Below are positions 36,725 to 57,536 of a stretch of 64,000 bases of DNA, piece after piece. A program made the position numbers and the translations under genes. Source of the DNA: Basidiobolus meristosporus CBS 931.73 (Eukaryota; Fungi; Basidiobolomycota); assembly GCA_002104905.1 (NCBI GenBank), contig MCFE01000273.1:41927-105926 (forward strand), read 5' to 3'. The notes beneath the pieces are model-generated. The model worked only from the letters and a program-made list of their open reading frames with translations. It did not search any database and was not told the DNA's origin. Position 1 is the stretch's first letter; each line of letters begins with the position of its first letter.

Positions 36725-38494
36725 TTAATCGTAGTCTGAATCAAACAGTAAGCATTGATTCACTTCCCTTATAGCCAGTTCCACTGTTGAGATCATTAAA
36801 TTGGGGTACTTGGACCAATACAAATGCCATGTCTGCGCAGAGTTGAGATCCAGGTGACATGTCTTTGAAATTCTACAGGAGAATCCGTCATACAAGGAAA
36901 CGGAAACTGGACTGTCAGGATGGCTTTCACGAGAATAATGGTTCTTACGATAAGGAAGCATATCCGATGTTAGGTGCATAAACTCCATGAAGATTCTCTT
37001 TTCACTTTGATGCGCATGCTCACAACTTCTTCTGATGTTCAGCGAATAAAGCTCCAGCACATGAATCTGGGTTCCCCAGTCCCACTCCACCAAAGTATCG
37101 CTGCTGTCTTCTATCACTAATCCTCTCTCTACAAGGCTTTGGACGAATTTCAGATCAAACCGCTGTAACACTGAGTTAAGATCGACTGGTTGAGAAATTC
37201 CCAATTCGAAGAGATACTCCACTAGCTCCGGCCGTTCACTTTGATACACATACGGATATTCCGTTTCAAGCTCTCTATCTCTTCTTTCAAATTTTTTTTT
37301 CGCTCTTCTCTGGGTGATGTTTCGCAAGACGCTCTTCTTCACCAAAGGGACCAATTTTCTGAGAAGTCGCAGATGTCCGCACTCAATCCCATACAAGATG
37401 TATTTCTTAACCAGGTGAACACTCGAGGTTACTTCGGCCAGGTCCACCAGAAATAACAATACATCTTCGGATTGCTGTCCAGCCCAACAAGAATAATGTC
37501 GCCGGTTCAAGCCTTCGTCTGATTCGGTGAACGTCATCAATAGCTCGAGATAGCACACAGGTGTCTGGTAGGGGCCCAGACGGTTCTGGGCTGTCTGAAT
37601 CCAACCTTTGTCTAACAAAGAGGAAATGGTATTACGTTGAGAAGCATACTCGTGCAAGGTCTTCACTACTGCAAGGTTGGGAATGTCTACGAAGAAATCG
37701 TACTCCACGTGTACATTATATGGCTCATTGAACAAGATCTCAAGAGTGCTAACATATCCCAACCTTGCGCACGCTCTAGCAATCATTATCAACACATTCA
37801 TCTCTGAGGCATAATGAAGCATCAGCTCTCGATATGTGGCTTCTGATCCTAAAGGGACTGCTATTAAGACTCTCAATAGCCGTATGGGATTTTGGCCACC
37901 GACAAGCTCCAAGGCGTCTGGGACGTTGTCATTCTGGATGCAAGCCTTGATGCGGTCTTCTATGCTTATTGTTGGTAGAATGTGCTGATTTCTCATATAC
38001 CAAATGTACATCTCGCTTGACGTTGAGATTCCAACAAGTAAACAGGCATGGATACACTGAGCCCAATGCTTTCCCTCTGGCATGGTGGGGTTTTCTTCGA
38101 ACAGGAATTCCAGCATATTTAGCTTTCCTTTCAAGAGGCAAAGAAGCTTGGCCGGTGTGTCGTACTCCTTGTAGCCTTCTCCGATGAGACTAGTCAAGTA
38201 GGACAGTACATCTAGGTCCCCATAGCACGCTGCACTTGCGAGTATGTAGTCTATTGGACAGACTATAGCAGTCAGAAGCCATCGGACGAGTGGCTTGTGG
38301 CCACTTTTGATAGCTTCCTCGAGAGCAAACCCCGCGCCACCCTGCTGGGTTACTAGGTCTTCAATTCGATTGCCAGGCTTTCCAAAGAACGCGAAATACA
38401 GAACTACGTCGCCGACATAGAACAGTATAGTTTCCTGTAACTCCTTCGGCAATGCACTTCTTAAAGCCTCAACCAACTCCGGAAAGTCGGACAT
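36725..38494 (-). CDS. Array paralog P1: ~589-aa intronless protein with F-box-like N-terminus and degenerate ankyrin-like repeats
   Basis: Open ORF; probable start MSDFPEL by alignment with the paralogs; LPKELQETILFY; ankyrin-like ALEEAIKSGHKPLVRWLL, SAACYGDLDVLSYL, ARACARLGYVSTLEILF, YGIECGHLRLLRKL. CDS is certain; the domain call is by motif only. Confidence 0.8.
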   Translation of the reverse strand: MSDFPELVEALRSALPKELQETILFYVGDVVLYFAFFGKPGNRIEDLVTQQGGAGFALEEAIKSGHKPLVRWLLTAIVCPIDYILASAACYGDLDVLSYLTSLIGEGYKEYDTPAKLLCLLKGKLNMLEFLFEENPTMPEGKHWAQCIHACLLVGISTSSEMYIWYMRNQHILPTISIEDRIKACIQNDNVPDALELVGGQNPIRLLRVLIAVPLGSEATYRELMLHYASEMNVLIMIARACARLGYVSTLEILFNEPYNVHVEYDFFVDIPNLAVVKTLHEYASQRNTISSLLDKGWIQTAQNRLGPYQTPVCYLELLMTFTESDEGLNRRHYSCWAGQQSEDVLLFLVDLAEVTSSVHLVKKYILYGIECGHLRLLRKLVPLVKKSVLRNITQRRAKKKFERRDRELETEYPYVYQSERPELVEYLFELGISQPVDLNSVLQRFDLKFVQSLVERGLVIEDSSDTLVEWDWGTQIHVLELYSLNIRRSCEHAHQSEKRIFMEFMHLTSDMLPYRKNHYSRESHPDSPVSVSLYDGFSCRISKTCHLDLNSAQTWHLYWSKYPNLMISTVELAIREVNQCLLFDSDYD

Positions 38495-38749
38495 GACAAG
38501 GCTTCGTTGTCCGAATAGGCAGCAGATTGGGTTAAATTCCAACATATGTACTACGCGCAATCTCTTCAACCAATAGGGCGTTTAGGAAATTTAAGTGAAG
38601 CTATGCTTACCCCACATCTAGATTCATAAACCGGACTGGTAAATCTGGCTTTGGATTAGGATACCGGATTTGTTAATGCGATAAATAACAATCAACCACC
38701 TGAAACCCCTCGTATCAACAATAAGTATGGAGGGTAGGAATTGGCATTG

Positions 38750-39640
38750 AAGTAACCGAAAATGGAGATCCAGACTCTGCAGATGTCCGTAAGTAGTTTA
38801 CTAAATGAATCTTTGAGGAATTCAAGAATATGGCACAGCAGGATCATAGCGAATCCTGCTGGGAGCACGATATTATATTACATTACTATCGAGTATGTTT
38901 CATCTCATTTAGTTTGCTTCATCACCGGATCAGTGGCTTCCTGAGGTGGGCGTATTCCATTGCCATTGATTTGACTTGATTGCCAGTGTTTTCACTTTGG
39001 TGGAGCGCAATAACCCCGAAAATGGAATGTATTAGTTTGCCCTTGACCTCAGCTCTTTATTGTATTTCTTGAAGATCGAGAATCCTTGTATTGGGGTAAA
39101 AAGCGTCTAACGTATCATTTCCATCCAATGTTGACATTTGAGGGTTATGCCTACCTAAAGACGCAAAGATACCGCAAGGAGTTGTAGTGGTGCACATAGT
39201 ATATTGAAACATCTACAAAGTCCAAGATTGTCAATGAGTATCTTCACCAATGTGAAATAGCTATGTACAAGTGCAGCTTTCATTTCGACAGGAAAGAGGC
39301 TTGGCCGTTATGTCATACTCCTGGTATTCATCTCTTATGAGACTAAAGAAGTAAGACGGTGCGCCTTGATTCTCATAATATACTACACTAGTGAGCAGGT
39401 AAACTATCCAATAACTTGAAACAGTCAAAACCCATACGAGCTGTGGCTTGTGGCCACTTTCTTTTATTTCTTTGAAAACAAACTCCTGCCCAGCGTAGGG
39501 GTTAATAAGTTTAGAAAGCATCAAGTAGCCTTTTCATGGCTCTGCAAATCAAACAACAAACTGTTAAATATCTTGCAGTACCACCAATATACATCAAATA
39601 AATTGCTACAACTAACATACAAAAGAAATATCCAAAAATA
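38750..39640 (-). pseudogene. Decayed, diverged array paralog
   Basis: IYLMYIGGTARYL (~ILFYVGDVVLYF) and FVFKEIKESGHKPQLVWVLTVSSYWIVYLLTSVVYYENQGAPSYFFSLIRDEYQEYDITAK align to the family N-terminus; stops and frameshifts follow. Confidence 0.75.
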
Positions 39641-39779
39641 TGTTCATCAACGTGGCCAACTGAATTGCAAAATTGACTTGCAAAAAAGTTCCAACTCAAA
39701 TTCTTCAAGTCATTGATTGGGAATTCTACTACAGTTTGAACTCCTGGCCATTAAAATATAACTCTACTAAGGCTCTCTA

Positions 39780-40280
39780 CCAAGAAGGTCTAGTAAAGCA
39801 TGTCTATATCTGATGGAAAATCTCAAGTTTACACCTCTGCACTTTTTCCTATGGAATTCCTATTATTCAGTGTTATACCAACTCATATGGAGTAACTCTA
39901 ACTTAAAAGTATAGGGGAAACAATACAACTTATCTTTATGGTGTCTGAGCCTATTGATATGCAAAGTTATAGTTCTAAGCAAGCCACAAGTTTGGCTAGT
40001 ACTAAGCTGACCATAGCCAGATTCTAGTTGTAGTGTATTGCTTAAAGGGCTATTTATGGAGAATTTGTACTTCAGCATCTTTATACTTGTTGAGTAATAA
40101 TTAAGGACTAAGATAAGCCTTGATAGCACTATGGCTTTTTGTATAGCTTGCCAATAACAGCAACCACAGTTAGCAATGGGACAAGCATTATATACTTAGC
40201 TGATATAATGCCAGCTCAAGTGCAAATGTACAGTTGTACTAGTTATTGGAAATAAGATGAAAAAACACCAAGTTGCAAAG
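39780..40280 (-). mobile_element. Possible LINE (RTE/L1-like) RT C-terminal remnant
   Basis: QAIQKAIVLSRLIL and PLSNTLQLESGYGQL loosely resemble post-RT motifs of non-LTR elements. CpG-depleted. Weak. Confidence 0.3.
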
Positions 40281-40283
40281 TAT

Positions 40284-40745
40284 TGTTGTAAGAGTTTTGG
40301 AGATATTGGATGTGAGTGGGAGAACAAGTAAATTAATTCACTTGATGATTTATTGAATGTTGAAGTGGTACTTATACTTTCACACAGTTTTGGCAAAAAA
40401 ACATGCAGAGCATACTTAGGAAGGTCCCAAGCCCATGTGTGCAAGGTTTGGGGCTGCTTGGACCACTTTGGGAATTTGGAGCAAATTCCTTGTTGGGATT
40501 CACTCAGAAAATTTTCACCAAAGCATCAGATACTGACAAAATGTCAATCCTCAAAGTTGTCCAAGCAGCCCCAAACCTTGTACACATGCTCCTGAGACCT
40601 TCCTAAGCATATTCTACATGTTTGCTTTACCAAGACTGTGTAAAAGTATAAATATCACTTTTGCATTCAATAAATCATCAAGTGAAAACCATATAATATA
40701 CTTACTCTCTGAATCATTTCCAATATCTCCAAAATTCTTACATCC
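40284..40745. repeat. Fold-back pair of Copia-B-like LTR fragments in inverted orientation
   Basis: Left arm TGTTGTAAGAGTTTTGGAGATATTGG...; right end CCAATATCTCCAAAATTCTTACA is its reverse complement; ~190-bp arms. Confidence 0.85.
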
Positions 40746-41059
40746 CTATCAAGATGCACTCATATACAGAATCTGTACTAATGTAAGATTGGGAATATCC
40801 AGTGATAGCTCATACTTGATATATTTGCTACAAAACCTAGGAGTGAGCTGGATGAGACCTGGAGGTTCCAGCATGTACTTGCCGTAGTTAACACAAAACC
40901 TTGGTATTTTAGAACCAGCCATCTGTATTGTTTTGCAATAAATATACGGAAATCTCACAGATCTATGAGCTAACATAATCAACAACAGTAGTGTTACTGT
41001 AGACTGTTGTATGTTTTATGGTTACATCTATATATTCACTTAACATAGTCACTTGGATC

Positions 41060-41350
41060 ACTGCTTACAAATCTTAGAGTACTCAACCTAAACCTCTTAT
41101 TGTGATCTGCCTGGAATATTTACCAAAGTATCCAGTGCCCATAACATCAAATATTGATAAGTTGTCCAAATAGCATTAATCTTTGTCCACAGGTTCCTGG
41201 GGCCCTTCAGAATATATTCTACATGCTTGCTCTGCTGAGGCCATGTAAAAGTATAAATAGCACTTTTACATTCAATTAATCATCAAGTGAAGCCACACAA
41301 TTACCTGGGCTGCCTATCACCCCTCCCCAATATCTTCAAAAGCTTTTATA
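41060..41350 (+). repeat. Degenerate Copia-B-like LTR
   Basis: Blocks TATTTACCAAAGTATC, GATAAGTTGTCCAA, GTAAAAGTATAAATAGCACTTTTACATTCAA, CCAATATCTTCAAAAGC match the reverse complement of the B LTR. Confidence 0.65.
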
Positions 41351-41694
41351 ATACAGAAAAGTGTGACAAGAAAGTAACCAAGTAGTCATTATTACAAAAT
41401 TACCTGATACCAACAGTATGTCATTATATAACCAGTAGAATTCCAATTTCCTCAGAGTCCAAATTTCAATAAATACAGTTCTGACCTTTTTCAGGGCAAG
41501 TTGACATGTGTTCTAGAAGGTGTGATGCCAGAGTAATCCTCATGCCAAATGTGGTAACAATCAGTACACTAACTCCAGGAATATTTACACTTGAAAAATA
41601 GACTGAAGAACACCAGTGGAACACTAGCAGAATATCCGAGGAATAATGATGAAATACCAGTAGAACGCCATATGGAATCCATCCTTGATATTTT

Positions 41695-41985
41695 TCATAG
41701 AGTATATCAAGTTGTACACCAATGACTGTTTAGCGCAAGCCTGGAGGTTGTAGAGGTATCCTAAAAGTGTTCTTCACATGGGAATGGGTCACACTCCTTT
41801 TGGTTTCCAAGTTGCAGGAAATCCCCATCACTGTCATCACTCACCAATCCTGTCTCCACCAAGTTCTGAATAAATTTCAGGTTAAACCGCCGCAGCAGTG
41901 GTAATAAGTTGGGTTGGTTGGGAAATTCCCAATCTAAAGAGATACTCGACTAGCTGCGGCCGTTCACGTTGATATGTGCATTGGG
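41695..41985 (-). pseudogene. C-terminal fragment of an array paralog
   Basis: TYQRERPQLVEYLFRLGISQPTQL, then sequence homologous to RFDLKFIQNLVE.GLV.DD.DGD of P3/P4. Confidence 0.82.
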
Positions 41986-42271
41986 ATATTTGGATTCCTG
42001 ACCCTACTTTCGACCATTGGCCAATTGGCTGTATTAGTGAAGTCCTGGAAGTAGCCGAGCTTTCCAATGGAATTTATGCAACTCTGAGCCTTGAATTCAA
42101 CCTCGAGTATCTTTATCAGAGCTTAGGACAAATAATAGAGATATAACTGTCACAACTCGACGCACTATAATTCTCCGTATCTATACAATAAAGATACTCG
42201 GGAAGAAATTGAAGATGTCGAATTTGACAAGTATCGTTTTCCTCGAAAAATTATCATGGAAAAGAGCGCGT

Positions 42272-44041
42272 TTATTCGTGTTGTTGACGGAATAGTAATT
42301 GTTGATGTACTTCCCTAATAGACAAGTCAGCATTAGAATACAATATATTGGGGCATTTTGCCCAATATATATGACTTGTTTCTGCAGCGTGGGGAGTAAG
42401 TTTAAAGGCGGGTGCAAATCTAGTAGAGAATTCGGTACTAGTGGAAAAAGAAACTGAACTGGAACGGTGGCTCTCAAGGGGATAATAATTCTTTTCAAAT
42501 GGAAACACATCCCACGAAAAGCGGATCAGTTCCAAAAGATAGGCCTTTTCAGTTTGATGCGCGTGTTTAAAACTGCTAACAGTGTTCGCCAAATACGCTA
42601 ATCTCATATACTCCCTAGTTTCTGAGTTCCATCTCATCAACTCCAAACTCTCGTCTTCTATTACTAACCCTCTTTCTATAAGGACTTGAACGAACTTCAG
42701 ATCGAACCGCTGCATCAGTGGTCTGAGAAATGATGGCTGATATATTCCCATTTCGAAGAGATACTCTACGAGCTCCGGCCGTTCGCTTTGATATATATTA
42801 GGAAATTCCGTTTGAAGTTCCATTGCCAAATGGTTCATATCTTCTTCCACTATTCCTTGGCTGATGCTTCGCAAAACGCTCTTCTTGACCAAAGGGATCA
42901 ACACTCTAAGAAGTCGTAGATGCCCACATTCAATCCCATACAAGATGTATTTCTTTACTAAGCGAGCACTCGAGGTTACTTTGGCCAGGTCCACCAGAAA
43001 TAACAACACATCCTCGGATTGCTGTCCAGCCCAGCAACAATTACGTCGCTGTACTTTGCTTTCCTTGGATTTAGTGAAGACTTCTAATAGCTTCAGATAG
43101 CACTTGGGAGTCTGGTAGACACTCAGACGGTTCTTGACAATCTGGATCCAACCTTTGTTTAACAATGAGGAAATGGCATTCCGTTGAGATGCATACTTGT
43201 GCAAGATCTCCACTACTGCAAGGTTGGGAATGTCTACAAAGAAATCGTACTCCACGTGTACGTTATATGGCTCATTGAACAAGATCTCAAGAGTGTCAGC
43301 ATATCCCAACCTTGCACACGCACTAGCAATCAGTGTCAAAACATTCTCCTCTGAAGCATAATGATGCATCAATTCTCGATATGTGGCTTCTGATCCTAAA
43401 GGGATTGCAATTAAGACTCTCAATAGCCGTATGGGATTTTGGCCACCGATAAGCTCCAAGGCGTCTGGAACGTTGTCATTCTGGATGCAAGCCTTGATGC
43501 GGTCTTCTATGCTTATTGTTGGCAGAATGTGTTGATTTCTCATATACCAAATGTACATTTCGCTTGATGTTGAGATTCCAATATGTAAGCAGTTGTAACT
43601 ATACTCGGTTAAACCCTCCCCTTCACTAAAAGTGGGGTTTCTTTGGAACAAGTGCTCCAAAAAGTGCACTTTTCCCTTCAATAGGCAGAGTAGCTTGGCC
43701 GGTGTATCGTGCTCCTTGTAGTCTTCTCCGATGAGATTAATCAAGTAGAACAGTACATCTAGGTCTCCATAGCACACCGCACAGGTGAGCAGGTAGTCTA
43801 TTGGAAAGCTTACAGCAGTTAGGAGCCACAGCAGTAGCTTCTTGTGGCCACTTTTGATAGCTTCCTCCAGAGCAAACCCCGCCCCGCCCTGGTGAGTTAC
43901 TAGCAGCCCAAAGCGAGAGCTATGTTTTTCGAAGAAGTTGAAATATAGGACTACGTCGCCAACATAGAAAAGAATAGTTTCCTGTATTTCCTCCGCTAAT
44001 GTGTATCTTATGGCCTTCACCAAGTCCGGAAATTTGGTCAT
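42272..44041 (-). CDS. Array paralog P2 (589 aa)
   Basis: Open ORF, collinear with P1 over its full length. Confidence 0.82.
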   Translation of the reverse strand: MTKFPDLVKAIRYTLAEEIQETILFYVGDVVLYFNFFEKHSSRFGLLVTHQGGAGFALEEAIKSGHKKLLLWLLTAVSFPIDYLLTCAVCYGDLDVLFYLINLIGEDYKEHDTPAKLLCLLKGKVHFLEHLFQRNPTFSEGEGLTEYSYNCLHIGISTSSEMYIWYMRNQHILPTISIEDRIKACIQNDNVPDALELIGGQNPIRLLRVLIAIPLGSEATYRELMHHYASEENVLTLIASACARLGYADTLEILFNEPYNVHVEYDFFVDIPNLAVVEILHKYASQRNAISSLLNKGWIQIVKNRLSVYQTPKCYLKLLEVFTKSKESKVQRRNCCWAGQQSEDVLLFLVDLAKVTSSARLVKKYILYGIECGHLRLLRVLIPLVKKSVLRSISQGIVEEDMNHLAMELQTEFPNIYQSERPELVEYLFEMGIYQPSFLRPLMQRFDLKFVQVLIERGLVIEDESLELMRWNSETREYMRLAYLANTVSSFKHAHQTEKAYLLELIRFSWDVFPFEKNYYPLESHRSSSVSFSTSTEFSTRFAPAFKLTPHAAETSHIYWAKCPNILYSNADLSIREVHQQLLFRQQHE

Positions 44042-46912
44042 GATAAGCTAGTCCAGACTTCCTTGTCCGAATAGTCAGTAGCAGCAGCTATGAGGGTTAA
44101 ATACCAAGCTGTACCCCAAATGCAATCCTGTAGACCAATAGGGCATCACGGGAATTTAGATGAAACAATGCTTTCTTTACATCTAGATTAATAACTTGAC
44201 TGATCATTTGCCATCAGCTTATAATCCTGAATTTGACATTACAAAATCGTAAGGCAGCTGGTCACTTGTAACTTCTAATACCACTAGTACATATGGATGA
44301 TAGGAATAGCATAGTAGAAGCCGAAAATGTCGATCAAGATTTACAGATTTTATGTGATGTTTGCCGGGCAAATTGCTGCGGTAAGTAAGAATATAGCACT
44401 ATAGTAGCCTACCAATTCCTGTTGGGATCATGTGACTTTGTTACAATATATCAAGTGTATTTCATCTAATTTAGCTCACCTTATCTCCGGATTAATGGCT
44501 GCCTGCGACAGGTGAATTGTACTGCCATTGATCTGACTTGGTTACCAGCATTATGATTTTGGATGAGCACATAACCATAAAAATGCGACTCGTTTGTTGG
44601 CCCTTTACATAGGCTGGTAACTGCATTTTTAGTGCCAAACTGGGTGTTTCTGTGTGGCCACTACCGCAACATACCAATACTGTCACAATGTTTTGTATTT
44701 CAGGGGTGTACCATCCAGTGTACTCTCTGTAATTGAAGCTGTTTGAGAGCTATAAGAGCATAAGGTCAGCATACTACAAGCCTCAAGGAGCTGAAAGTCA
44801 CCTCAAATCCTATTCAGTACAAACTAACAAGATAATTTTCTTCAGATTTTAGCTTAGCCTGTTAGGATTTGCTCTGTGTCATGTTTCAGTATCTTTTGAT
44901 ATCCCTAAGGGATATGGATTTGTTTACAAATGAAATACTCCCAGATAGCTTAGAGTAGTTGCTCCAGGCTTCTAGAAATCTGATTCAACTCAGAATCCTC
45001 ATTACCCTTAGAGCCCAGTTAGGTCAGTCAGTAACTGGTACATATTAGCTTCATATTGTTAATTGCTTCTAAGCTGTGCTACCACCTTTGACAGGCAGAT
45101 GAAAGTTCAAACTTATAAAAAAAATCACCTGTGAAAGATCTTGAAGTTGGAATTCATTGGATTTTTAGCTGGAATTCTGCTGATGTCACTACTACAAATT
45201 TTCTGTTACAACAGATGTTATGAGCAGCTGATTACCAAACTTGCTACAAATGCTAGTTGGCCTAGTCCCCCCTGCAAAGGATGTCTGCTTGTCCTCTGTG
45301 AAGCTAGTACCTGACATAGAGAGCTGTCACTTTTGGGAAAGGTGGAACTTAGCTAGTATTTTGATAGTCTTATTCTGGCCTTTTCTTAATTTTTTTAGGG
45401 ATCCCAGGGCCCTCAAGGAGCAGCTTAAGACTTTGCAGCATTGGTCACAGTAGCTTAGCAAAACCAAGAGCAAAAGCAGATGGTGTAGGCTAGATAAACC
45501 AAGAAGCAAATATTATGTAGGTTTTCCAATACTGTAAGTGCCCTCTTTGGGTGCACTTATCTGTAGTAGTTATTTGGCTTAGATCTGGGACATTCAGATA
45601 ATGTAATGCTACATGTATTTTATTGACAAGTTGTGATTTATGTGTCTAAGATTCAGTTCATAGCATGCTAACTAATTGCTGGAATTAGTGAAGGTCTTGT
45701 GGTTATCACTTCTTTTGGACTTTTAATAAAGCCTCCAAGGATTGCATACTTCTTCCTGCAACCTTCTCAATAACAGCCTTATCATTGGTGTCCCAGAGTT
45801 TTCCTACAAGTATAAGCACTATGCTTGAGCTCAAGAGAGTAACCTTCAGAAATACCACCTCTATTCCCTGGTCTATCTGGCCATTTTTATTACATACCCA
45901 ATGTCAGGGTTTGCAGTCTCTTACTAAATTCCTGTGAGCCTGCTCTTCCTAGTTTTTACCACATCTTCTTACTTTTCTTTACCACTACATCCCAATTGCT
46001 GAGATTAGCATACTTTCTCTTGTACCTAATTCTTCTAACTGACTTCCAGTGCCTGCTAGAACTCTGCAAGGTTATCTTTAAGGATGCTACAATTGCAGCA
46101 GCTACGTATCTAACACATGCAGTTAAGGGTGAGGTCTCCTCACTTTTCCACACTTGGCTGAGTATTTGGTCACCATTTATCTACATACACTCACAACTCA
46201 ATCTGCAGATTGTGACATTCAGTACCCATACAGTAAAAAGATACTGAATCACTACTTGTTTGAAAAATTACTGAACTTCAGTAGAGTCTTGGAATATACA
46301 GTGAGAAGCTCAATATTTCTTACAATTCACCTTTTATCAATCATGGTTCTAGTCATTTTGAGGACAGGCTGCTGTATATCTCAGATAATGTTGTGCTGGA
46401 GTATTTCTCATGCCAAATGTGGAAGTAATCAGCACACTGATCCAAGGGATACTTACACATCTATTTCAATTAGGTAAATCAAGGAGATAAGTGGAAAACA
46501 AGCAGAGCACCAGCAGTATACTTACCAGATACAAGCAGAATTTTCATAAAATCTAAGCTTGATGTTCATTAAGTGCAATTGCTGTTCTCTGGTCACCAAC
46601 AATTATAGGGTTTGAATAACTTTTGAAGCAAACCATATGTGTTGATTCACCTCTTTTGTATCAAACTCCATATAGAGACCATCAACTAGGCCACCTTGAT
46701 CTATATCAGTGCCATGCTCACTTACAGTCAAGGTCTACAATGTATAAACCCTTAAAAAATGGGGGAAAGGCCAGCAGAATATCATCACAAAATCAGCTGA
46801 ATTCTAAGCTTCTCAAAGCTGATAACTTACAATATCTCAGATTCCAGCTGTTGAGCAGAGAAGCCAACATATTTTTCAGGCAGAGACTAGGCCAACTAGC
46901 TTTCACACATTT

Positions 46913-47261
46913 TATTGTAAAAACTTAGAATTCCACCTAATTATGCACCTATCTTAGTCACTTAGATCATTACCTTCAAATCCTAGAGAATACTGACCAA
47001 ATTCCTTGTTGGGATTTACTTAGAATATTTTCACCAAAATATCAGATACCTAGAACATGAAAATTAGATAAGTTGTCCAAGCAGCCCCAGACTTTGTACA
47101 CATGCTCTTGGGACCTTTCCAAGCCTATTCTACATGGTTTGTATGACAAGACCATGTAAAAGTATAAATGCTACTTTTACAGTCAATGAATCATTAAGTG
47201 ACAACCACATCATCTACTTGTTCTCACAATCATTTCCAATATCTCCAAGTCTCTTACAACA
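46913..47261 (+). repeat. Solo LTR, Copia family B-like, opposite orientation to B1
   Basis: TATTGTAAAAA...CTTACAACA with TSD CATTT on both sides. Confidence 0.92.
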
Positions 47262-47637
47262 CATTTTAGGTGGAGTTGCAAATTCTTACCACACCATCAA
47301 GGTGGAATATCTTTGGTTGGCCCAGGCCTCCTTATCCACAGAGTTGGTGGCAGCAGCAGCTCAGAGGGTAAAGTCCTCAAAGATATTCCAAATGCAACTT
47401 GGTGGACCTATAGGAGATTGAGGAGAATAGGCAAAACTATACTTGCCCCACATATACATTGATAACATGACTAATCATATGGCTTTAATGACTTCTGTTG
47501 CTAAGCTTGCTTCAAAGGTGGGAGCATTGCTGCTATTCTAGCTTTATTATTGCATGTTTTGGCTTAATCTGCACTGTATACACAGAGTGATAATATGTAT
47601 TGCTTAGAACATGTGCAAGCTTCATACAGAGGGTAAG

Positions 47638-49392
47638 TCAGATTTCATGCTCAGGTGAGGTATTTTCAAGGACTTTGGAAAGAAGCAAGTTCACACTGGC
47701 CATGCCAATGATAGAATTGACTGCTGTAATCAACAAATCAGGATTACAATGCGAATACCACCTGCATGTCCATGAAAGAGCACGAGTAAGCTGGTCACAT
47801 GTTGAATGAGAAACTGGACCAGCGTGAGTAACATCAAGGGAACAGAAATGCTTTCGATAAGGAATCACATCCGCTGTCAAGTGGATCAACTCCATCAGGT
47901 AGCCTTTTCCACTTCGATGCAAATGGTCAAGACTCTGGCCAATGAATTTCAAATGAGATTGGGTCACTGTCCTCTTGGTTTCCAAGTCCCATTTCAGGAA
48001 ATCCCCATCTCTGTCATCTCTCACCAAACCTCTCTCCACCAGGTACTGGATGAATTTTAGGTCAAACCGTTGCATCAGTTGGTTCAGGTGCACTGGTTGA
48101 TAAATTCCCAAACCAAAGAGATATTCGACTAGCTCCGGCCGTTCACTTTGATATACATTCGGATAATCCGTTCTTTGCCCCCTTGCCGTCCTGTGCAAAT
48201 CCTCACCGGCTATTCCTTGAGCAATGCTTTGCAATACTTTCTCCTCTAACAAGGGGACCAGCTTCCGGAGAAGTCGCAGGTGACCAGATTCAATCCCGTA
48301 AAAGATGTATTTCTGTAATAGCTGGCCATTGGAGGTCACTTCCGCCAAGTCTACCAGAAACAACAATACATCTTCGGATTTCTGTCCCGACCAGCATCGA
48401 TTGTATCGTTGACTCCTGGTATCGCGTGAATCAGCGAAGGTTGTTAGTAGCTTCTGATAGCACTCGGGGGTCTGGTAGACACTCGGAGTGGTTTTCAGTG
48501 TCCGAATGCAACCTTGAACCAACTGACTGGAAACAAGGTTCCGTTGAGATGCATATCTATGCAAGACCTTTACAACAGCAAGGCTGGGGATGCTCACAAA
48601 GAAATCGTACTCCACGAGTACTTTAAATGGCTTGTCGAGCAAAATCTCAAGAGTATCGACATATCCCAACCTCACACATGCTCTTGCAATCATTGTCAAG
48701 ACGTCTGCTTCAGAAACATATTGGGTAATTAACCTCCGATATGTTTTTTCTGACCCTAAAGGGGCTACTTTCAGGGCACCTACTAATAATTCTGTATTCT
48801 CATGGCCGACAAGCTCTGTGACCCCAGCGACGTGGTCATTCTGGATGCATGCCTTGATGCGGGCTTCCTTGAAAATCGGCGGTAAAATGTCAAGATTTCG
48901 CAGATACCAGGAGTATGTCTTGCTTGATTTCGAGATACCAGCAACTAGGCAGGCCTCCTTAACCTGCTTATTCCCTTCACAAAATGTAGGGTTTTCTTGA
49001 AACAAGTATTCGAACGAGTGTAGCTTTCCTTTCAATATGCAAAGAAGCTTGGCAGGTGTGTCGTACTCCTTGTAATCTTCCCCAATGAGGCTAATAAAGT
49101 AACTCAGTATGCCCAGGTTCCCATAGCACACCGCACTAGTGAGCAGGTAGTCTATTGGATACACTACAGAAGTCAGAAGCCATTGGAGGAGCGGCTTGTG
49201 GCCACTTTTAATAGCTTCCTCCAAAACAAACCCCGGCCCACCCTCGGAGTATACTAATTCTTCAAAGTGACAACCAGTCTGCCCAAAGAAATGGAAATAC
49301 AGAACTATGTCCCCAACATAGAAAAGAACAATTTCCTGCATCTCTGCAGACAGTGAACTTACAGTCTTCACCAACTCCTGAAGGTTGGACAT
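47638..49392 (-). CDS. Array paralog P3 (584 aa)
   Basis: Open ORF with the same conserved blocks. Confidence 0.82.
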   Translation of the reverse strand: MSNLQELVKTVSSLSAEMQEIVLFYVGDIVLYFHFFGQTGCHFEELVYSEGGPGFVLEEAIKSGHKPLLQWLLTSVVYPIDYLLTSAVCYGNLGILSYFISLIGEDYKEYDTPAKLLCILKGKLHSFEYLFQENPTFCEGNKQVKEACLVAGISKSSKTYSWYLRNLDILPPIFKEARIKACIQNDHVAGVTELVGHENTELLVGALKVAPLGSEKTYRRLITQYVSEADVLTMIARACVRLGYVDTLEILLDKPFKVLVEYDFFVSIPSLAVVKVLHRYASQRNLVSSQLVQGCIRTLKTTPSVYQTPECYQKLLTTFADSRDTRSQRYNRCWSGQKSEDVLLFLVDLAEVTSNGQLLQKYIFYGIESGHLRLLRKLVPLLEEKVLQSIAQGIAGEDLHRTARGQRTDYPNVYQSERPELVEYLFGLGIYQPVHLNQLMQRFDLKFIQYLVERGLVRDDRDGDFLKWDLETKRTVTQSHLKFIGQSLDHLHRSGKGYLMELIHLTADVIPYRKHFCSLDVTHAGPVSHSTCDQLTRALSWTCRWYSHCNPDLLITAVNSIIGMASVNLLLSKVLENTSPEHEI

Positions 49393-49833
49393 TATTAGCT
49401 AGGTTCGATTTCCTTGTCGGAGTAGCCAGAAGCAGTAGCAGTAGCAGGGAGGGAAAATTCCAAGTGAAATTCCGTGGACCAATAAGACATCAAGGCTATT
49501 TAAACCAAGTAATGTTTACTCCAACTAGGTTATAACGTGATTCATCACCTGGCTTTGGCTTACGAAATGGAAATGACATCAATCCGGTAAAAGGTAGTCG
49601 AGCGCTTGAAAACTGGGCATTGCGGAAGCTGAAATCTCGGAAGTATGTTGCAAATGAAGATTACTGAGATAATCGAGAACAATCGCTTCCGCAGTTAATC
49701 AAATACCTGGGAGCACGACTCTGTCTCACATTGCTATCAAGAAAGATTCATGCTATCTGGTTCCCTAAATAAGCCAACCATAGGCTGTTCACGATGAGCT
49801 AATAAATGGGTGGATAGTTCTGAGCAAAAGATT

Positions 49834-51624
49834 TCATATGGGGGAATGCTTGATATATTTTCGTTGCTGAGGAAGCAGCAGACGTAGATTTGCTGCCCTT
49901 ATGGCCGACTCTACATTTGAAACCATTACTTTTGGACACTTGGCCCAATTTAAAGGGCATATCCGCATAAAGGGGAGGAGAGGGTAGCATGACCATGCAA
50001 ACGTACTAGAGAATTTGTCACAAGCGGAAAAAGAAACTGGCCTGGAATGATGGCTTTCAAGGGAACAATATTGCTCTCGATAAGGAAACACATCCCATGT
50101 GGAGCGGATCAACGCCATCAGGTAACCCTTTTCACTTCGATACGTGTGATAGGGATTCTCGCTAATGTCCCGCAATATGAAATCTGTCAGCATTCTCTTG
50201 GTTTCTAAGTTCCATTCCACCAAATCACCATCGCTGTCATCTCTCACTAATCCTCTCTCTACAAGATTCCGAATGAATTTCAGATCAAAACGATGCATCA
50301 GTGGATTAAGATGGGTTGGTTGAGTAATTCCTAACTCGAAGAGATATTCCACTACCTCCGGCCGTTCGCCGTGATATATATTCGGATACTCCATTTCATA
50401 TCTCCGTGCATTTCTGTGTAAATCTTCTTCTGCTATCCCTTGGGTGATACTTCGCATTACTCTCTCCTTTAACAAAGGGACCAACTTCCTGAGGAGTTGC
50501 AGGTGCCCACATTCAATTCCATACAAGACATATTTCTTTACTAGGCGAGCACTCGAGGTCACTCCAGCCAAGTCTATCAGAAATAACAATACATCTTCGG
50601 ATTGTTGTCCAGCCCAACGAGGATTAAGTCGTTGGTTGATGCTTTCGTATGAATCGGTGTATGTTTTGAGCAGCTTGAGATGGCATTTGGAGGTCTGGTA
50701 GGTGCTCAGACGGGTCTTAACTCTCCGGATACGACCATAACTCAACAAACAGGAAATGATATTCCTTTGCGATGCATACTTGTGCAAGATCTCCACTACT
50801 GCAAGGTTGGGAATGTTCAAAAAGAAATCGTACTCCACATGTACATTGTATGGCTCGTTGAACAAAACCTCAAGAGTTTCAGTGTATCCCAGCCTTACAC
50901 ACGCTCTAGCAATCAATGCCAGGACATTTGCTTCTGAAGCATAACTGAGAATTAACTTTCGATATGTCTCTTCTGATCCTGAAGGGGCTACTCTTAAGGC
51001 CTTTACTAATAGTGTGGGTCTTCGATGGCTGGCAAGATCTATGGCTCCAGCGACGTTGTTATTCTGTAGACATGCCTTGATGCGGTCTTCCTTGCTTATT
51101 AGGGGCAGAATGCGATGATTTCTCAAATACCAAGTGTAGGTCTCGCTTGATTTCGAGATTCCGACAAGTAAACAGCTATGAATACATTCGTCCCAACACT
51201 GCCCTTCTTTTAAAGCGGGGTTTTCTTGAAACAAGTATTTTAACATGTGCAACTTTCCTTTCAATATGCAAAGAAGTTTGGCCGGTGTGTCGTGCTCCTT
51301 GTAGCCTTCTCCAATGAGACTAATAAAGTAGCTCAGTATGCCTAGGTTCCCATAACACACTGCACTCGTGAGGAGATAGTCTATTGGATAGCTTACAGTA
51401 GTCAGAAGCCATCGGAGGAGTGGTTGGTGGCCCCTTCGTATGGCTTCCTCCAAAACAAACCCTGGTCCGCCCTGAGAGATTACGAGGTCTCCAATGCGAC
51501 TACCAGGCTTTCCAAAAAAGTTGAAATATAGAACCACATCGCCAACATAGAAGAGGACAATTTCCTGTATCTCTGTTGAAAGGGAAACTCTTAAAGCCTT
51601 AACTATCTCCTGAAAGCTGGACAT
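49834..51624 (-). CDS. Array paralog P4 (~596 aa from MSSFQEI)
   Basis: Open ORF; start assigned by alignment to the paralogs; only ~440 bp from P3. Confidence 0.82.
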   Translation of the reverse strand: MSSFQEIVKALRVSLSTEIQEIVLFYVGDVVLYFNFFGKPGSRIGDLVISQGGPGFVLEEAIRRGHQPLLRWLLTTVSYPIDYLLTSAVCYGNLGILSYFISLIGEGYKEHDTPAKLLCILKGKLHMLKYLFQENPALKEGQCWDECIHSCLLVGISKSSETYTWYLRNHRILPLISKEDRIKACLQNNNVAGAIDLASHRRPTLLVKALRVAPSGSEETYRKLILSYASEANVLALIARACVRLGYTETLEVLFNEPYNVHVEYDFFLNIPNLAVVEILHKYASQRNIISCLLSYGRIRRVKTRLSTYQTSKCHLKLLKTYTDSYESINQRLNPRWAGQQSEDVLLFLIDLAGVTSSARLVKKYVLYGIECGHLQLLRKLVPLLKERVMRSITQGIAEEDLHRNARRYEMEYPNIYHGERPEVVEYLFELGITQPTHLNPLMHRFDLKFIRNLVERGLVRDDSDGDLVEWNLETKRMLTDFILRDISENPYHTYRSEKGYLMALIRSTWDVFPYREQYCSLESHHSRPVSFSACDKFSSTFAWSCYPLLPFMRICPLNWAKCPKVMVSNVESAIRAANLRLLLPQQRKYIKHSPI

Positions 51625-51844
51625 TACAAGCCAGACTAGGCTTCCTTGTCGGAGTGGTCGAAAATAGCAGCAGGGAGGGAAATTTCCAAATGAAATTCCG
51701 TGGACCGATAAGGTAAGGGAATTAGAACAAAACAATGATTGCCCCACCTGTAAATTTATATCCTAGCTGATTATGTAAGGGTCTTGGCTGACTTGAATAA
51801 TGCTATCCAGTTAGACTCAACCGATAATCCCTTGTTGCCCTTAT

Positions 51845-52030
51845 AATACTTGCGAAACCTTTAGCTATAGACCCTTCCAAAATTAAGAAAACATAACGAA
51901 GATCATTCCTTATATATGCTGGAGAGGCGTACATCTTGGCATTGGTTGTCAGAGCATGTGTGAGGTTGGAATATGTTGTCACTCTTGAGGTTCTATTCAA
52001 TGTTCCGTCCAACGTACAGGTGGCTCCTTG
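51845..52030 (+). pseudogene. Inverted internal fragment of an array paralog
   Basis: ILAKPLAIDPSKIKKT*RRSFLIYAGEAYILALVVRACVRLEYVVTLEVLFNVPSNVQV aligns with LLVKALRVAPSGSEETYRKLILSYASEANVLALIARACVRLGYTETLEVLFNEPYNVHV (P4). Confidence 0.8.
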
Positions 52031-52449
52031 GTAACCGTCTCCAGCCTTGATCCAATGATCAAGTACTCTATTAATTACTTGCCACACCCACTTTTCGAAA
52101 GCAGTCGCCTAAGGGTAAACGGTATCACACAACAATTTCTTGATCCAAATAGATCATTGCTCTGATGAGCTGTCGAAGTTTAAGCCTATCACCGATAATT
52201 ATTGTTGCACTCGCTGCCTTATGAATCATGAGTTCATGCTCAACTTGTTAGTCGATCCGTTACTGCGAATTCTGAAATCACGTACAAAATAGTCGTTTAT
52301 TGTGCGCACATTTCTATGGCGAGCACAAAGCAATTATCTGCTTGACATTTGATGAATTCATTAACAGCACATCAGGAAATTCCAAAAAACCGATGAACTC
52401 GAAATCAATTGACCGTTCATATAGGATTACTAGCCAATACTTTGGCATG

Positions 52450-53810
52450 AAAAATATCAATATAATATAAGTAGAGGTAACCATTAAATTATCATTCTAG
52501 GATTTGAGTATTGTATATTGCTCTGCTATTGATTTGACGATCAATATTTTTACTATGGTGGGACTTGAATCTAAAAATGGAATGTGTTGGTTAATTCTTC
52601 CATAAGCTTTCAATTGAATTCTCGGCACGTCGAGCTTTCCATCTTTTCCTTTTGCGACAGATGATTTGCTATTTTAAGGAGCTATTCCAAGCTATCGTGG
52701 TATATGTTTACGGGCTACGATTAGGTAGCGCCATGAAAATGCTACAAAGAAGGGTGTAGATAACTGAATAGTATATTGCAATTCCCACAAGTCAAAATCA
52801 TATAAAAGAAAATCGCAACTACCACAACAGTTCATTAATAACACAAACCAAGCGGCAGGCGCTGTTGGGTACTTTCGTTTTGGCGGGAGTACCAAGTCAA
52901 AATATACTAAAATGAAAGATATTCGATTTTCCTGAGTAGAAATCATAATACCTCAAACCCACTATGAAGTAATGCCGAGCTTCCCAGTCAACGATAAAGC
53001 ATAAGTGATCCCCAAGGTAATGCTTATTATCATCCCATCGAATTTGCTATATATATCAATTGTCAACATTTTACACTGAATTAGCTAAAGGTGGTTTATC
53101 AATTAACTACTGAGGCAGTAGTAACAGCCACAATCTTGGCTTTCGGGTAGCTTACCAAGGGTAACTGTTCTGAGCATAAAGTGGAATATAAAGGTGGAAG
53201 AAACAGATCTGGTATAGTGCACGGTTAATCTCGTGGTATGGAATTATGTAATGCTGAGGTGATTGAATCTTCCAGGTAGTGCTTTTCGCTCGGACAACAT
53301 CCGACGGTATTAGTTCCATTTCCCACAATATGGAATTAGTGCTTTCCAAGCCCTAGTCAAGCAAATCATTATTGCTGATAAATATTTTTTGGTGTAGTGT
53401 TCATTACATATTGGAGGAGAGAAATATAAAGAGCACATCGTAGTTAATTCCGACTGTCCAAGTAGTAGGTAGCAATGAACCCATTTTGGACAACGGGGCT
53501 TTTCCTAGAATCTAAGGATACGTTTTCCTGGCAAAATACAAAGGAGCTTTGTAGGCGTATACTATGTAGTGCTCTCTAAACTTACATCGGTCGGAAACCA
53601 CCTGAGAAGTAGCTGGCGACCACCTCTGGCAGCTACATCGAAATCAAGCTCTGGCCTAACCTGAGCGAACGCTAAGTTTTCATATTGCAAGGCAGACTAC
53701 TTGAAGAAGTCAAAGTGTAGAGACACCTCACCAGCAACAAGAAAGACAAATTCCTGCATCTCTTTCAATAAAGTGCAACTCATAACATACAGTATTTCTT
53801 GGAAGCTGAG
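52450..53810 (-). pseudogene. Long decayed, diverged array paralog
   Basis: LLSFQEILYVMSCTLLKEMQEFVFLVAGEVSLHFDFF...AARGGRQLLLRWF...TPTKLLCILPGK at 53400-53810; ALPWGSLMLYR*L (~AVPLGSEATYREL) near 53000; NCCGSCDFLLYDFDL near 52820. Confidence 0.65.
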
Positions 53811-55196
53811 CAGTATTTGTCAAGCTAAGATTTCTTGTGAAAAATCTCGAATCCATAGCTGGGATGGAATACTCAGGATGATGTTCTATGGACCAATACA
53901 GTATCAAGGGAGTACAGGTTACAATAATTACTGCACCTAATGTAATATATTAGGTATCTCTAGTGTCATTTCTGACTTATATTAGGTGATATATTGCCCA
54001 TCTCCTAAGCTCACGGTGCCTATTAATCCTTGTGAGTATCCAGTTCTTACAGCCTATCACCACATCAGTTTATCTATGACATAAACACGTTAATCTAGCA
54101 AACTAATGATATACTCAGCTTGTTTCAAACGCTGCTGATTGACTTGAATTTCGATACACAAAAATACATAATGGCAAAATATATCAAACTCCATGTTAGA
54201 TTGAAGATAGTGGCAATTGATGTCCACACTGCTATAGAATCTGTTAGGCACTTTCATCCCATCAAATACTACAAGATGTTGACTATATTCAGGCAGATGT
54301 TCCATACTTCACAGAATCACTTTTGAGAGCTTCTAACTGCACAACAGCCACAATAACACTTCTGAGAGTGACCCCAAACAATGGAAAAACACCTCAGTTG
54401 GTCAGTGAGCCCAATTGTATGAGAGCTGAATCACCAAGTCTTTTCCAGAGAAGTAGTATATAGTTGTGCATTCCTTTAACATAGCTTCTTACGGAAAAAA
54501 GGACTTGTTGTAGTAAGTACTTAGGTATATCCAAGGTTCTAAGAAATAAATAATAAATAATACACATAGCCCTACATTGGTCTAAAATGTCTATTTTTTA
54601 TAGGTGAACACATGCTCAAGATAGGAAAGCTACTCTGCCAATTTGCAAAAGAGTTTAACTGGTGCATGATTCTACTTGTGCAGCAGTTAAATGCTACTGG
54701 CTTGCCAGCATAGAAAAGGTTTATTTATGGTCTATGTAGAGAGTAGGATCTCAAAGATTTTGCCATGCCCTGACATCTGAACATCGTTGGCACCTCAGAT
54801 CAAAATTCCTCGGATTGATGAAATTTCATGGGGATTGAGGCCATACCTATAATTGCGCCTCATGTTTACTGAGGTACATAGCTGATTATCTAGATTTTTA
54901 GCTTTTACTATCGGGATTGGTTGGGGGATGAGTTGCAAGAAATAGGATCCCTTACATAGTTTCTGGATGGTGGTAAGTAGTGGAATTATAATGCCTTGGG
55001 CCAAAACATTAAGGAAAAGACATTAAAATGCATTGATAGCATTAATGCTGAATACTTCACTATGCTATCCGGCTAGATGCGGCGCAATCATCGGTTTGAT
55101 CATGATTCCCTTGATTTGCAGAATTCCAACTGATATAAACCCTCCGAGCAGCTTCTTCCAACTGTTCTGATTTAAGAAAGCCAAACATAGTAAGCA

Positions 55197-56969
55197 ATGC
55201 TCAGCCTTCAGCGGATATTGGGTACCATGAAGAATTCTCTCTCTGTGGAGACACAAGAAATCATCCTTTTCTATGTTGGTGACGTAGTCCTATATTTCGA
55301 CTACTTTGAAAAGCCTGGCTTTCACTTTGGTCACCTGGTAAACTCCCAAGGGGGACCGGGGTTTGCTTTGGAGGAAGCCATCAAAAGCGGCCACAAGCCA
55401 CTCCTCCAGTGGCTTCTGACTGCTGTAAGCTATCCAATAGACTACCTACTCACGAGTGCAGTGTGTTATGGGAGCCTAGGCGTACTGTCCTACTTTATCA
55501 GTCTCGTAGGAGAAGACTACAAGGAGCACGACACACCGGCCAAGCTTCTTTGCATATTGAAAGGAAAGGTGCACTTGTTGGAGTACTTGTTCAAAAAAAA
55601 TCCCACTTTTCGAAAAGAGCAAGGTTGGGCTAGACGTATTAAGGATTGTCTATTAGCTGGTATCTCATCATCAAGCGAGATACACTCTTGGTATTCGAGA
55701 AATCGTCTCCTGTTGCCCGAAATTAGCGGAAAGGACCGCATCAAAGCGTATCTCCAGAACGATAGCATCGCCGGGGTCAGAGAGCTTCTCCGCAATCATC
55801 CACCTATAACGCTAGTGAGCGCATTAAGAATGGTGCCTTCGGCATCAGAGGAAACATATCGAGTGTTAATTCGTAATCTAGCCGGTCTAGCATACGGCTT
55901 GACATTGATTACTAGAGCGTGTGCAAGGTTGGGGTATGTTGATACCCTTGAGATTCTGTTCAACGAGCCATACAATGTACACGTGGAGTACGATTTTTTT
56001 GTAGCCATTCCTACCCTGGCAGTAGTGGAGGTTCTGCATAAATATGCATCTCAACGGAACAGCATCTCTTGCTTGTGGAGAAATGGCTCTCCTAAGGAAG
56101 TTCAATCTCGATTCAAAACGTACCAAGATTCCGAATGCCATCTCAAGTTATTGAGAATCTTTACCGAATCAGAAGAAAGTCATATCCAAAGTCATAATTC
56201 TCACTGGACTGGTCAGCAGTCGGAAGAGGTATTGATGTTTCTGGTGGATTTAGCTGACGTAGCCTCGAGCGCTCATCTACTAAAGAAATATTTCTTGTAC
56301 GGAATCGATTGTGGGCACTTGGGGCTTTTAAGGAAGCTGGTTCCGTTCCTAAGTCAAGAAGATTTGGAATATATCACGCAGCAGATCACACAAAGTAATT
56401 CGACAATTAGAATACTTATGAGGAGGCGGGATTTGGATGACCTCCCACTGGAAAATGAAATGCGGTATCCTAATATGTATCGAAGTAAAATGCCGCAGGT
56501 GGTGGAATATCTCTTAGAAATGGGGATTACACAAATGGTATTCATCTCCGCACTTATTGGTTGGTTCGACTTAGAACTCATCCAAAACCTTGTAGAGAAA
56601 GAACTTGTGGCAGATCGCAAGTATGGTCGCTTGATGGAATGGAACTTGGAAACCAAGAGGAATCTGACAAATTCTATCTTGGAGACCATTCGGAATAACC
56701 ACGGCCATTCGTTTCGAAGTGAAAAACACTCCCTGATGCGTTTGATTCACTCAACAGGCGATGCAATACAATATCATGAGCAGTATCATACTTCTGAAAA
56801 CAACCAAGCCTTATCCATGTCTTTCTCTACATGTGACAAATTTTCCAATTCATTCATGAGCTCATGCCATTCGTTGATGGTTGATTACCCAGATGCACAG
56901 ATTGCAAAGATTGAATCGGCACTAAGGGCAACAAATGTGTGCTTACTACTTCCTCAACATGGTAACTAA
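55197..56969 (+). CDS. Array paralog P5 (590 aa), inverted relative to P1-P4
   Basis: Open ORF with the same conserved blocks and a short insertion before the YP..Y motif. Confidence 0.82.
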   Translation: MLSLQRILGTMKNSLSVETQEIILFYVGDVVLYFDYFEKPGFHFGHLVNSQGGPGFALEEAIKSGHKPLLQWLLTAVSYPIDYLLTSAVCYGSLGVLSYFISLVGEDYKEHDTPAKLLCILKGKVHLLEYLFKKNPTFRKEQGWARRIKDCLLAGISSSSEIHSWYSRNRLLLPEISGKDRIKAYLQNDSIAGVRELLRNHPPITLVSALRMVPSASEETYRVLIRNLAGLAYGLTLITRACARLGYVDTLEILFNEPYNVHVEYDFFVAIPTLAVVEVLHKYASQRNSISCLWRNGSPKEVQSRFKTYQDSECHLKLLRIFTESEESHIQSHNSHWTGQQSEEVLMFLVDLADVASSAHLLKKYFLYGIDCGHLGLLRKLVPFLSQEDLEYITQQITQSNSTIRILMRRRDLDDLPLENEMRYPNMYRSKMPQVVEYLLEMGITQMVFISALIGWFDLELIQNLVEKELVADRKYGRLMEWNLETKRNLTNSILETIRNNHGHSFRSEKHSLMRLIHSTGDAIQYHEQYHTSENNQALSMSFSTCDKFSNSFMSSCHSLMVDYPDAQIAKIESALRATNVCLLLPQHGN

Positions 56970-57452: not shown

Positions 57453-57536
57453 ATGTATGTAATACTCAATACCTGTGGCACTCTGAATCTAGCTGCAGAG
57501 GTTTGTAACATGTCACAAAAATGCATGGTATTATTT

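Follow-up and report, generated by a model that had tools for sequence, protein, structure and literature searches.

A cluster of intron-free, probably solenoid-forming paralogs at a transposon-rich scaffold end in Basidiobolus meristosporus

The last 64 kb of scaffold MCFE01000273.1 (105,926 bp; assembly GCA_002104905.1) of Basidiobolus meristosporus CBS 931.73, referred to here as the window, carries an array of related genes that lies entirely within the final 27 kb of the scaffold. The array consists of five intact genes (P1 to P5), four coding fragments and one remnant that retains upstream sequence only, with pieces of copia long terminal repeats (LTRs) interspersed. In window coordinates, and with lengths in amino acids (aa), the intact paralogs are as follows.

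36725-38494, minus strand: P1, intact, single exon, 589 aa, ATG start at 38494; the sole window copy with Leu-Pro in its N-terminal motif
42272-44041, minus strand: P2, intact, single exon, 589 aa; P1 is its nearest relative (67% identity, bootstrap 100)
47638-49392, minus strand: P3, intact, single exon, 584 aa
49834-51624, minus strand: P4, intact, single exon, 596 aa; separated from P3 by 441 bp
55197-56969, plus strand: P5, intact, single exon, 590 aa; inverted relative to P1-P4

The predicted products are 584-596 aa long and share 52-67% identity with one another (51-67% relative to P2 in a separate alignment). Public annotation calls all five open reading frames (ORFs) as genes, and calls no further gene in the array. 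For each of them the annotated span equals three times the product length plus a stop codon, and each is therefore a single exon; longer TTG-start and GTG-start ORFs for P1 and P4 are a product of the bacterial start rule used by the ORF lister. Gene models of the family are single-exon in 14 of 14 cases, taken from three genera, versus neighbouring gene models that are spliced in 15 of 23 cases. These observations agree with an earlier note on the window, which had described five intact, single-exon paralogs of about 590 aa together with at least four decayed copies, embedded in LTR debris. Scans of the array region for tRNA genes and tandem repeats were uninformative.

The decayed copies were located by tblastn with the five intact proteins (E values of about 1e-9 to 2e-15), and each corresponds to a partial protein only. 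Upstream blocks shared among the copies provide a further record of duplication.

39063-39518, minus strand: decayed fragment, approximately aa 45-197 of an intact copy; tblastn E down to 2e-15
41607-42018, minus strand: decayed fragment, approximately aa 405-518; tblastn E about 1e-10
51807-52022, plus strand: decayed fragment, approximately aa 203-264, inverted relative to the adjoining P4; tblastn E down to 1e-12
53397-53816, minus strand: decayed fragment, approximately aa 1-172; tblastn E down to 3e-12
38499-39067, minus strand: upstream block of P1, homologous to the upstream block of P2
44055-44688, minus strand: upstream block of P2, the partner of 38499-39067
36024-36221, minus strand: upstream-block remnant of a further P1/P2-type unit, 80% identical to 44492-44688, abutting a copia fragment and with no detectable coding part

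Additional tblastn matches at 34671-35044 (E 0.1-0.9) were discarded as chance; the portion at 34671-34818 falls within a copia LTR (34473-34818), and the remainder lies just past it. Because P1 and P2 share approximately 0.6 kb of 5' flank, the duplication unit comprises the gene together with an upstream block of about 0.6 kb. P5 and the fragment at 51807-52022 are the inverted members of the array. The cluster thus expanded through segmental duplications, both tandem and inverted, of units made up of gene and promoter, and copies were lost to truncation. With copia LTRs between and around the copies, one of them abutting the upstream remnant, this is a case of birth and death in a transposon-dense scaffold end.

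The window paralogs duplicated long ago and are kept by purifying selection, which is less strict in the C-terminal third. Across the ten pairs of window copies, the Nei-Gojobori ratio of nonsynonymous to synonymous substitution rates (dN/dS) is 0.29-0.43 at dS of 0.56-1.25. When the alignment is divided into 50-codon segments, the corresponding ratio of proportions (pN/pS) lies at 0.29-0.54 for codons 1-450 and rises to 0.63-0.70 for codons 451-600; in none of these segments is it above 1, a value reached only in the final 11 gap-rich columns. The array had been called diversifying in the earlier note, a description that these ratios do not support. Compared with the 52-67% identity of the paralogs at these dS values, the copia fragments that flank the array are 95-97% alike, and the LTR insertions are therefore later events.

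Relatives of these proteins are confined to a small set of fungi. Apart from the window copies, a word-indexed search matched only five proteins, four from B. meristosporus and one from B. ranarum. When 1.84 billion representatives were searched exhaustively with an HMMER profile, just nine matched, seven from Basidiobolus, one from Bifiguratus adelaidae (E 2e-10) and one from Umbelopsis isabellina (E 3e-5), with no viral, bacterial or amoebal homologue among them. Eight of the nine were traced to fungal records, and the ninth (P0017, a run-assembly protein) is 89% identical to the Umbelopsis protein. The Bifiguratus and Umbelopsis matches cover the N-terminal half only; alignment of the family with the Bifiguratus protein by hhalign gave a probability of 98.7% and an E value of 2e-16 over columns 15-282. 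Further searches that started with the Umbelopsis relative or with a mixed N-terminal alignment recovered no additional family members. The relatives in these two Mucoromycota genera are single-copy and single-exon, and the Umbelopsis gene is flanked by housekeeping genes for an SNF2 helicase and a proteasome alpha subunit. At the Bifiguratus adelaidae locus (MVBO01000052.1, 7572-9389), the 371-aa relative has, 31 bp further on and in the same orientation, a separate called ORF of 223 aa. Their combined length is close to the roughly 590 aa of the Basidiobolus proteins, and the gene may therefore be split or wrongly modelled. The family is very narrow, comprising Basidiobolus sequences and distant Mucoromycota relatives, and is without a Pfam model or a characterized member. 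In literature on Basidiobolus with ankyrin or F-box, we found no description of it. Basidiobolus species live in association with the gut of amphibians and reptiles and act at times as opportunists.

Clusters also occur outside the window. A second B. meristosporus cluster on scaffold MCFE01000330.1 (locus 7408-14458) includes an annotated copy (10001-11725), an unannotated long copy (12878-14458; 54% identity over approximately 545 aa) and two upstream fragments. In B. ranarum, three tandem copies on the same strand are spaced by 0.3-0.8 kb, with no called gene between them, and adjoin an RGS gene. Other family members are single genes beside ordinary host genes. One member, P0008 (scaffold MCFE01000569.1, locus 10001-13851), is encoded by the final called gene of its scaffold, 1.9 kb from the 264-bp (TTAGGG)n telomere array in which the scaffold ends, and several further members lie within 2-8 kb of scaffold ends. 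On scaffold MCFE01001143.1, a called gene for a 520-aa protein with a Pfam Thiol_cytolysin match (locus 7191-8811, minus strand) is located 3.5 kb from the family member P0004; a protein of this cholesterol-dependent-cytolysin type is unusual in a fungus.

In a neighbor-joining tree, built from an alignment with gap-rich columns dropped, a B. meristosporus clade of nine (bootstrap 98) takes in all five window copies, and the B. ranarum sequences form a clade of five (bootstrap 93). P0004, encoded on a different scaffold, groups with P1 and P2 (bootstrap 95). The species-specific clades indicate that B. meristosporus and B. ranarum expanded the family independently. The birth-and-death repertoire that had been proposed from the window's sequence is supported by the intact copies and fragments, by the tandem clusters in B. 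ranarum and elsewhere in B. meristosporus, and by the clades specific to each species.

Each of the paralogs is predicted to fold as an all-alpha protein. An AlphaFold2 model based on a 10-sequence alignment is a solenoid of 37 helices, with a mean predicted local distance difference test score (pLDDT) of 72 and a predicted template modelling score of 0.52. Pfam Ank profiles matched at the same position (aa ~59-135) in eight of ten members, and no other Pfam family matched more than once. All of these matches fall under the gathering score, and no scanned member reached the curated gathering score of the ankyrin clan. The best were 19.8 bits for Ank_2 (cut-off 27.3) and 20.6 bits for Ank_4 in a Bifiguratus relative, with 19.1 bits among the window copies (cut-off 22.7). 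Foldseek searches of the PDB returned a mixture of DARPin, PPR and armadillo solenoids (best E 9e-3, template modelling score (TM) at most 0.25). Among the best 50 matches in a viral library, nearly all were giant-virus ankyrin or F-box/ankyrin proteins, accompanied by three weak MGF 505 rows (E 4e-3 to 4e-2, TM 0.12-0.30). A PDB profile search with the N-terminal half retrieved designed helical repeats (E 6.5e-5) and, very weakly, the ankyrin domains of RNase L and p18INK4c; overall, single-sequence and profile searches of the PDB gave no match or merely generic helical-repeat ones.

The fold is probably a helical-hairpin solenoid far diverged from ankyrin, for which membership of the Ank family cannot be demonstrated. 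The earlier note had called the repeats ankyrin-like and had named AlphaFold and Foldseek as the check; the modelled all-alpha solenoid and the co-positioned Ank matches lend this description weak support, but every Ank score is sub-threshold and the structural matches are weak. The same note had counted about 6-8 degenerate repeat units of the form A-x-x-G-H/Y-L-x-x-L-x-(W/Y)-L, and these were not recovered. The literal motif has no match in P1-P5, and its G[HY] core occurs at two sites (aa ~65 and ~373) in four paralogs and at one (aa 65) in P2. Block-against-block comparison by hhalign was marginal, with best E values of 4e-4 to 2e-3 over 11-16 columns in 45 comparisons (E 4e-4 over 13 columns).

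The best-conserved part of the family is a block of about 45 aa at the N-terminus (aa 15-61), with the pattern L-x-x-E-x-x-E-x-I ... G-D-x-x-L-Y-F ... L-V ... G-P-G. Among the 17-18 members compared, Leu15 and Glu18 are each present in 16 of 17 and Glu21 in all 17; when 18 are counted, L47, G53, G55 and L58 occur in 18 of 18, and E21, D29, L32 and Y33 in 17 of 18. The L(P/S)xE(I/L)QExILFY motif that had been read from the window copies is thus real and strongly conserved. Pro follows Leu in 5 of 17 members, namely P1, two B. ranarum proteins and both Mucoromycota outgroups, and is replaced by Ser, Ala or Cys in the other 12. As had been noted, P1 is the only window copy with the canonical Leu-Pro pair, and the other four lack Pro. 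In the full-length AlphaFold2 model the block forms three short helices (residues 17-27, 30-37 and 42-52) at low confidence (pLDDT 56-69). A model of the N-terminal 62 aa by themselves reached pLDDT 55, had a secondary structure that differs from that in the full-length model, and was too poor for a fold search.

The suggestion that this block is an F-box did not hold up in profile searches. Across 15 family proteins there was no Pfam match to F-box, F-box-like or PRANC (PF00646, PF12937 and PF09372), with ten proteins scanned at E thresholds of 1 to 10 and five further relatives at E <= 0.1. The N-terminal 60 aa of all five window copies also lacked any F-box-type Pfam match at E <= 10, although HMMER filters may hide very weak F-box matches. 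No F-box protein was present among the matches of PDB sequence and profile searches.

Taken together, we consider it probable that this tandem cluster belongs to a fungal host-gene family of restricted taxonomic range, whose intron-free genes encode intracellular, all-alpha repeat proteins of about 590 aa. Each protein is probably organized in three parts, a strongly conserved N-terminal block of about 45 aa, a weakly ankyrin-like helical-hairpin solenoid and a C-terminal third that varies more. Given the fold class and the gradient of conservation, we hypothesize that the proteins function as intracellular protein-protein adaptors, in which the invariant N-terminal block would dock every paralog to one common partner and the variable C-terminal repeats could give each paralog a different target. 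The family itself grows by unequal crossing-over and loses members by truncation, and copia LTRs have inserted between and next to the copies, in a transposon-rich and partly subtelomeric compartment. Several points weigh against this interpretation. The ankyrin assignment depends on sub-threshold scores and on Foldseek matches that all have E of at least 4e-3 and TM of 0.12-0.30, and the internal repeat signals, both from hhalign and from motif counts, are marginal. The division into docking block and targeting repeats is read from the conservation gradient alone, and a tail under less structural constraint could explain that gradient equally well. Family counts are minimum values, since the searches were run on clustered proteins and the assemblies are fragmented.

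Outside the genes, much of the window is occupied by transposable elements. A copia LTR of approximately 345 nt recurs across it, and the young copies (3695-4039, 8028-8375, 34473-34818 and 58819-59166) are 95-97% alike. The elements within and around the array are listed below; they make the phrase 'embedded in LTR debris' an accurate one.

40284-40477, 40479-40742 and 41022-41353, no strand assigned: three old copies or fragments of the copia LTR, located between P1 and P2 and matching the young LTRs at 72-82% identity
46911-47269, no strand assigned: solo copia LTR, located between P2 and P3 and matching the young LTRs at about 88% identity
34473-36028, minus strand: truncated copia-type fragment at the left flank, an LTR plus about 0.9 kb of 3' internal region, 95-97% identical to 58819-60041 and 3697-4918
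58813-60326, minus strand: truncated copia-type fragment at the right flank, an LTR plus an RVT_2-bearing 3' pol region in two overlapping ORFs
61022-63914, minus strand: gypsy/chromovirus-type pol with RVT_1, RNase H, integrase and chromodomain in four consecutive ORFs, ending 86 bases short of the scaffold end

The array is bracketed by near-identical truncated copia fragments (34473-36028 and 58813-60326). The division of the right-flank RVT_2 region between two overlapping ORFs implies at least one frame break, and that of the gypsy-type pol among four ORFs implies at least three frame breaks or stops. A direct repeat (57195-57453 and 60272-60545, 81% identical, the pieces compared separately) lies on either side of the truncated copia fragment beside the gypsy-type pol, in an arrangement suggestive of a nested insertion. 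Copia gag/pol ORFs at 3117-11717 (Retrotran_gag_2, Pol_BBD, gag_pre-integrs, rve and SH3_retrovirus) and a DDE_Tnp_4 transposase ORF of the Harbinger/PIF type at 17486-18370 occupy the window's left third. Positions 24000-32000 form a GC-rich island (49-50% GC versus 37-44% elsewhere) with ordinary host genes, among them one of the DUF676 serine-esterase type and one with a Zds_C domain. For DUF676, the plain ORF matched no annotated product in an exact gene-product look-up; it differs from the annotated product, and the gene is thus probably spliced.

The abundance of these elements raises the question of whether the paralogs themselves belong to, or are carried by, a transposable element, in which case the array would result from transposition rather than from duplication of a host gene. 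Transposons (copia and gypsy pieces, the DDE_Tnp_4 ORF and LTRs between paralogs) do fill the window beyond the 24-32 kb gene island, and the array is bracketed by near-identical copia fragments. However, Pfam scans identified no transposon protein domain in the paralogs, the divergence among paralogs far exceeds that of the 95-97% identical flanking copia fragments, and the flank common to the duplicated units is limited to the 0.6-kb upstream block, which lacks terminal repeats. In addition, the B. ranarum copies are closely spaced beside an RGS gene without a called gene between them, the Umbelopsis relative lies amid housekeeping genes, and other relatives are found among ordinary genes. 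We therefore rejected a transposon ORF as the source of the family, an origin to which we give almost no weight. Very improbable too is horizontal acquisition from a giant virus, bacterium or amoeba with subsequent spread as foreign DNA, which had been raised as a possible origin. The genes are intron-free among mostly spliced neighbours, their GC content at third codon positions (GC3) is 0.45-0.51 versus 0.60-0.64 in two nearby host genes, and the viral library yields structural matches to giant-virus ankyrin proteins. Yet these Foldseek matches are weak (TM at most 0.3), and an ankyrin-rich viral library may favour them; the GC3 of the family is intermediate rather than foreign-looking, given 0.33-0.44 in copia ORFs; and the exhaustive profile search found no non-fungal homologue. 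The relatives in two other early-diverging fungal genera are single-copy, with the Umbelopsis gene between housekeeping genes, and this fits vertical descent. A viral or horizontal origin is largely refuted at the sequence level, and we rejected it. Two candidate functions were also set aside. The five window copies have no hydrophobic N-terminal leader by a crude test (mean Kyte-Doolittle value of the first 20 aa of -0.17 to +0.26), so that a classical secreted effector is unlikely, and no Pfam scan identified a nucleotide-binding domain, as would be found in an NLR-type protein. The analysis gave no indication of the part in defence, genetic conflict or host manipulation that the earlier note had suggested.

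A further alternative, the mechanism behind the earlier note's proposal, is that the paralogs are true F-box proteins, with the N-terminal block as a divergent Skp1-binding F-box and the proteins as substrate receptors of Skp1-cullin-F-box (SCF) ubiquitin ligases, the ankyrin-like repeats picking targets. The block opens at the extreme N-terminus with L-(P/S/A)-x-E-(I/L/V)-x-E-x-I-(L/F) and is followed by repeats, as in F-box proteins; it has the highest conservation in the family, as expected of a common docking module, and forms three short helices in the full-length model. The presence of Leu-Pro in both outgroups and in 3 of the 15 Basidiobolus members aligned there makes this pair look ancestral, and the viral Foldseek matches include giant-virus proteins described as 'F-box domain and ankyrin repeat'. 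Nevertheless, F-box-type Pfam matches are absent from the 15 proteins and from the isolated N-terminal 60 aa, and F-box proteins are absent from the PDB searches. In F-box proteins the Leu-Pro pair contacts Skp1. Here Pro has given way to Ser, Ala or Cys in most members, including four of the five window copies, and there is no conserved Trp at the third-helix position. The three helices are themselves modelled at low confidence, and the N-terminus-only model gives a different secondary structure. On balance, we regard the F-box interpretation as unlikely, with some evidence in its favour. A broader proposal is that the block is an unrecognized, highly divergent F-box-type or other E3 ubiquitin ligase-docking module with an early origin in the Mucoromycota/Zoopagomycota part of the fungal tree, and that it expanded in Basidiobolus as partly subtelomeric, transposon-associated substrate receptors whose variable C-terminal repeats track changing targets (non-self, mobile elements or gut-host factors). 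We offer this as speculation that is more doubtful still. If true, the expanded F-box families of plants and nematodes would be a parallel, and the known diversity of such adaptors would be extended.

Returning to the interpretation that we favour, a clustered host-gene family encoding intracellular repeat proteins, several known systems provide points of comparison. Canonical ankyrin proteins (Pfam Ank, Ank_2, Ank_3 and Ank_4) resemble it in the stacked helical hairpins of the all-alpha model, in the Ank-profile matches at aa ~59-135 in eight of ten members, and in the weak PDB profile matches to the RNase L and p18INK4c ankyrin domains. The Basidiobolus family differs from them in having apparent periods of approximately 27-32 aa with short loops, no literal repeat motif and a G-H core that occurs at most twice, and in scores that all fall below gathering; Foldseek against the PDB mixes DARPin, PPR and armadillo structures at TM of at most 0.25. 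The F-box plus ankyrin adaptors, such as Legionella AnkB and the giant-virus F-box/ankyrin proteins, similarly have an N-terminal L-P-x-E-type motif followed by ankyrin-like repeats, and Pithovirus and Pandoravirus proteins of this type are among the weak Foldseek matches. AnkB is absent from the matches and is compared by description only. Unlike these adaptors, the Basidiobolus family has no F-box profile match, has lost Pro in most copies and is not detectably homologous in sequence to viral or bacterial proteins.

Large DNA viruses maintain ankyrin multigene families that are clustered and turn over by duplication and loss. Those of Mimivirus, Pandoravirus and Pithovirus, and the MGF 505 rows, are similar to the present family in comprising many divergent paralogs of an ankyrin-like solenoid of about 400-700 aa. 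The resemblance is generic and at the level of fold (E 4e-3 to 4e-2, TM 0.12-0.30), and the fungal family is set apart by its conserved N-terminal block and by relatives that are all fungal. Lineage-specific fungal gene families, which gain and lose copies in subtelomeric or transposon-rich compartments, share with it tandem and inverted copies, fragments, interspersed LTRs, an array at a scaffold end, a member (P0008) near a telomere, and species-specific expansions. It departs from them in that only P0008 is shown to be subtelomeric and at least one cluster, that on scaffold MCFE01000330.1, is internal; location at a scaffold end is weak evidence because the assembly is fragmented. With the family defined, annotators have a name for about 20 'hypothetical proteins', and there is now a clean case, from a fungal lineage that has received little study, of genes being gained and lost in a transposon-rich or subtelomeric compartment. 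This is an uncharacterized, lineage-specific expansion of a repeat protein, ordinary in character and not a new kind of system, and its nearest counterparts are families of ankyrin-repeat adaptors and expanded multigene families with copy gain and loss.

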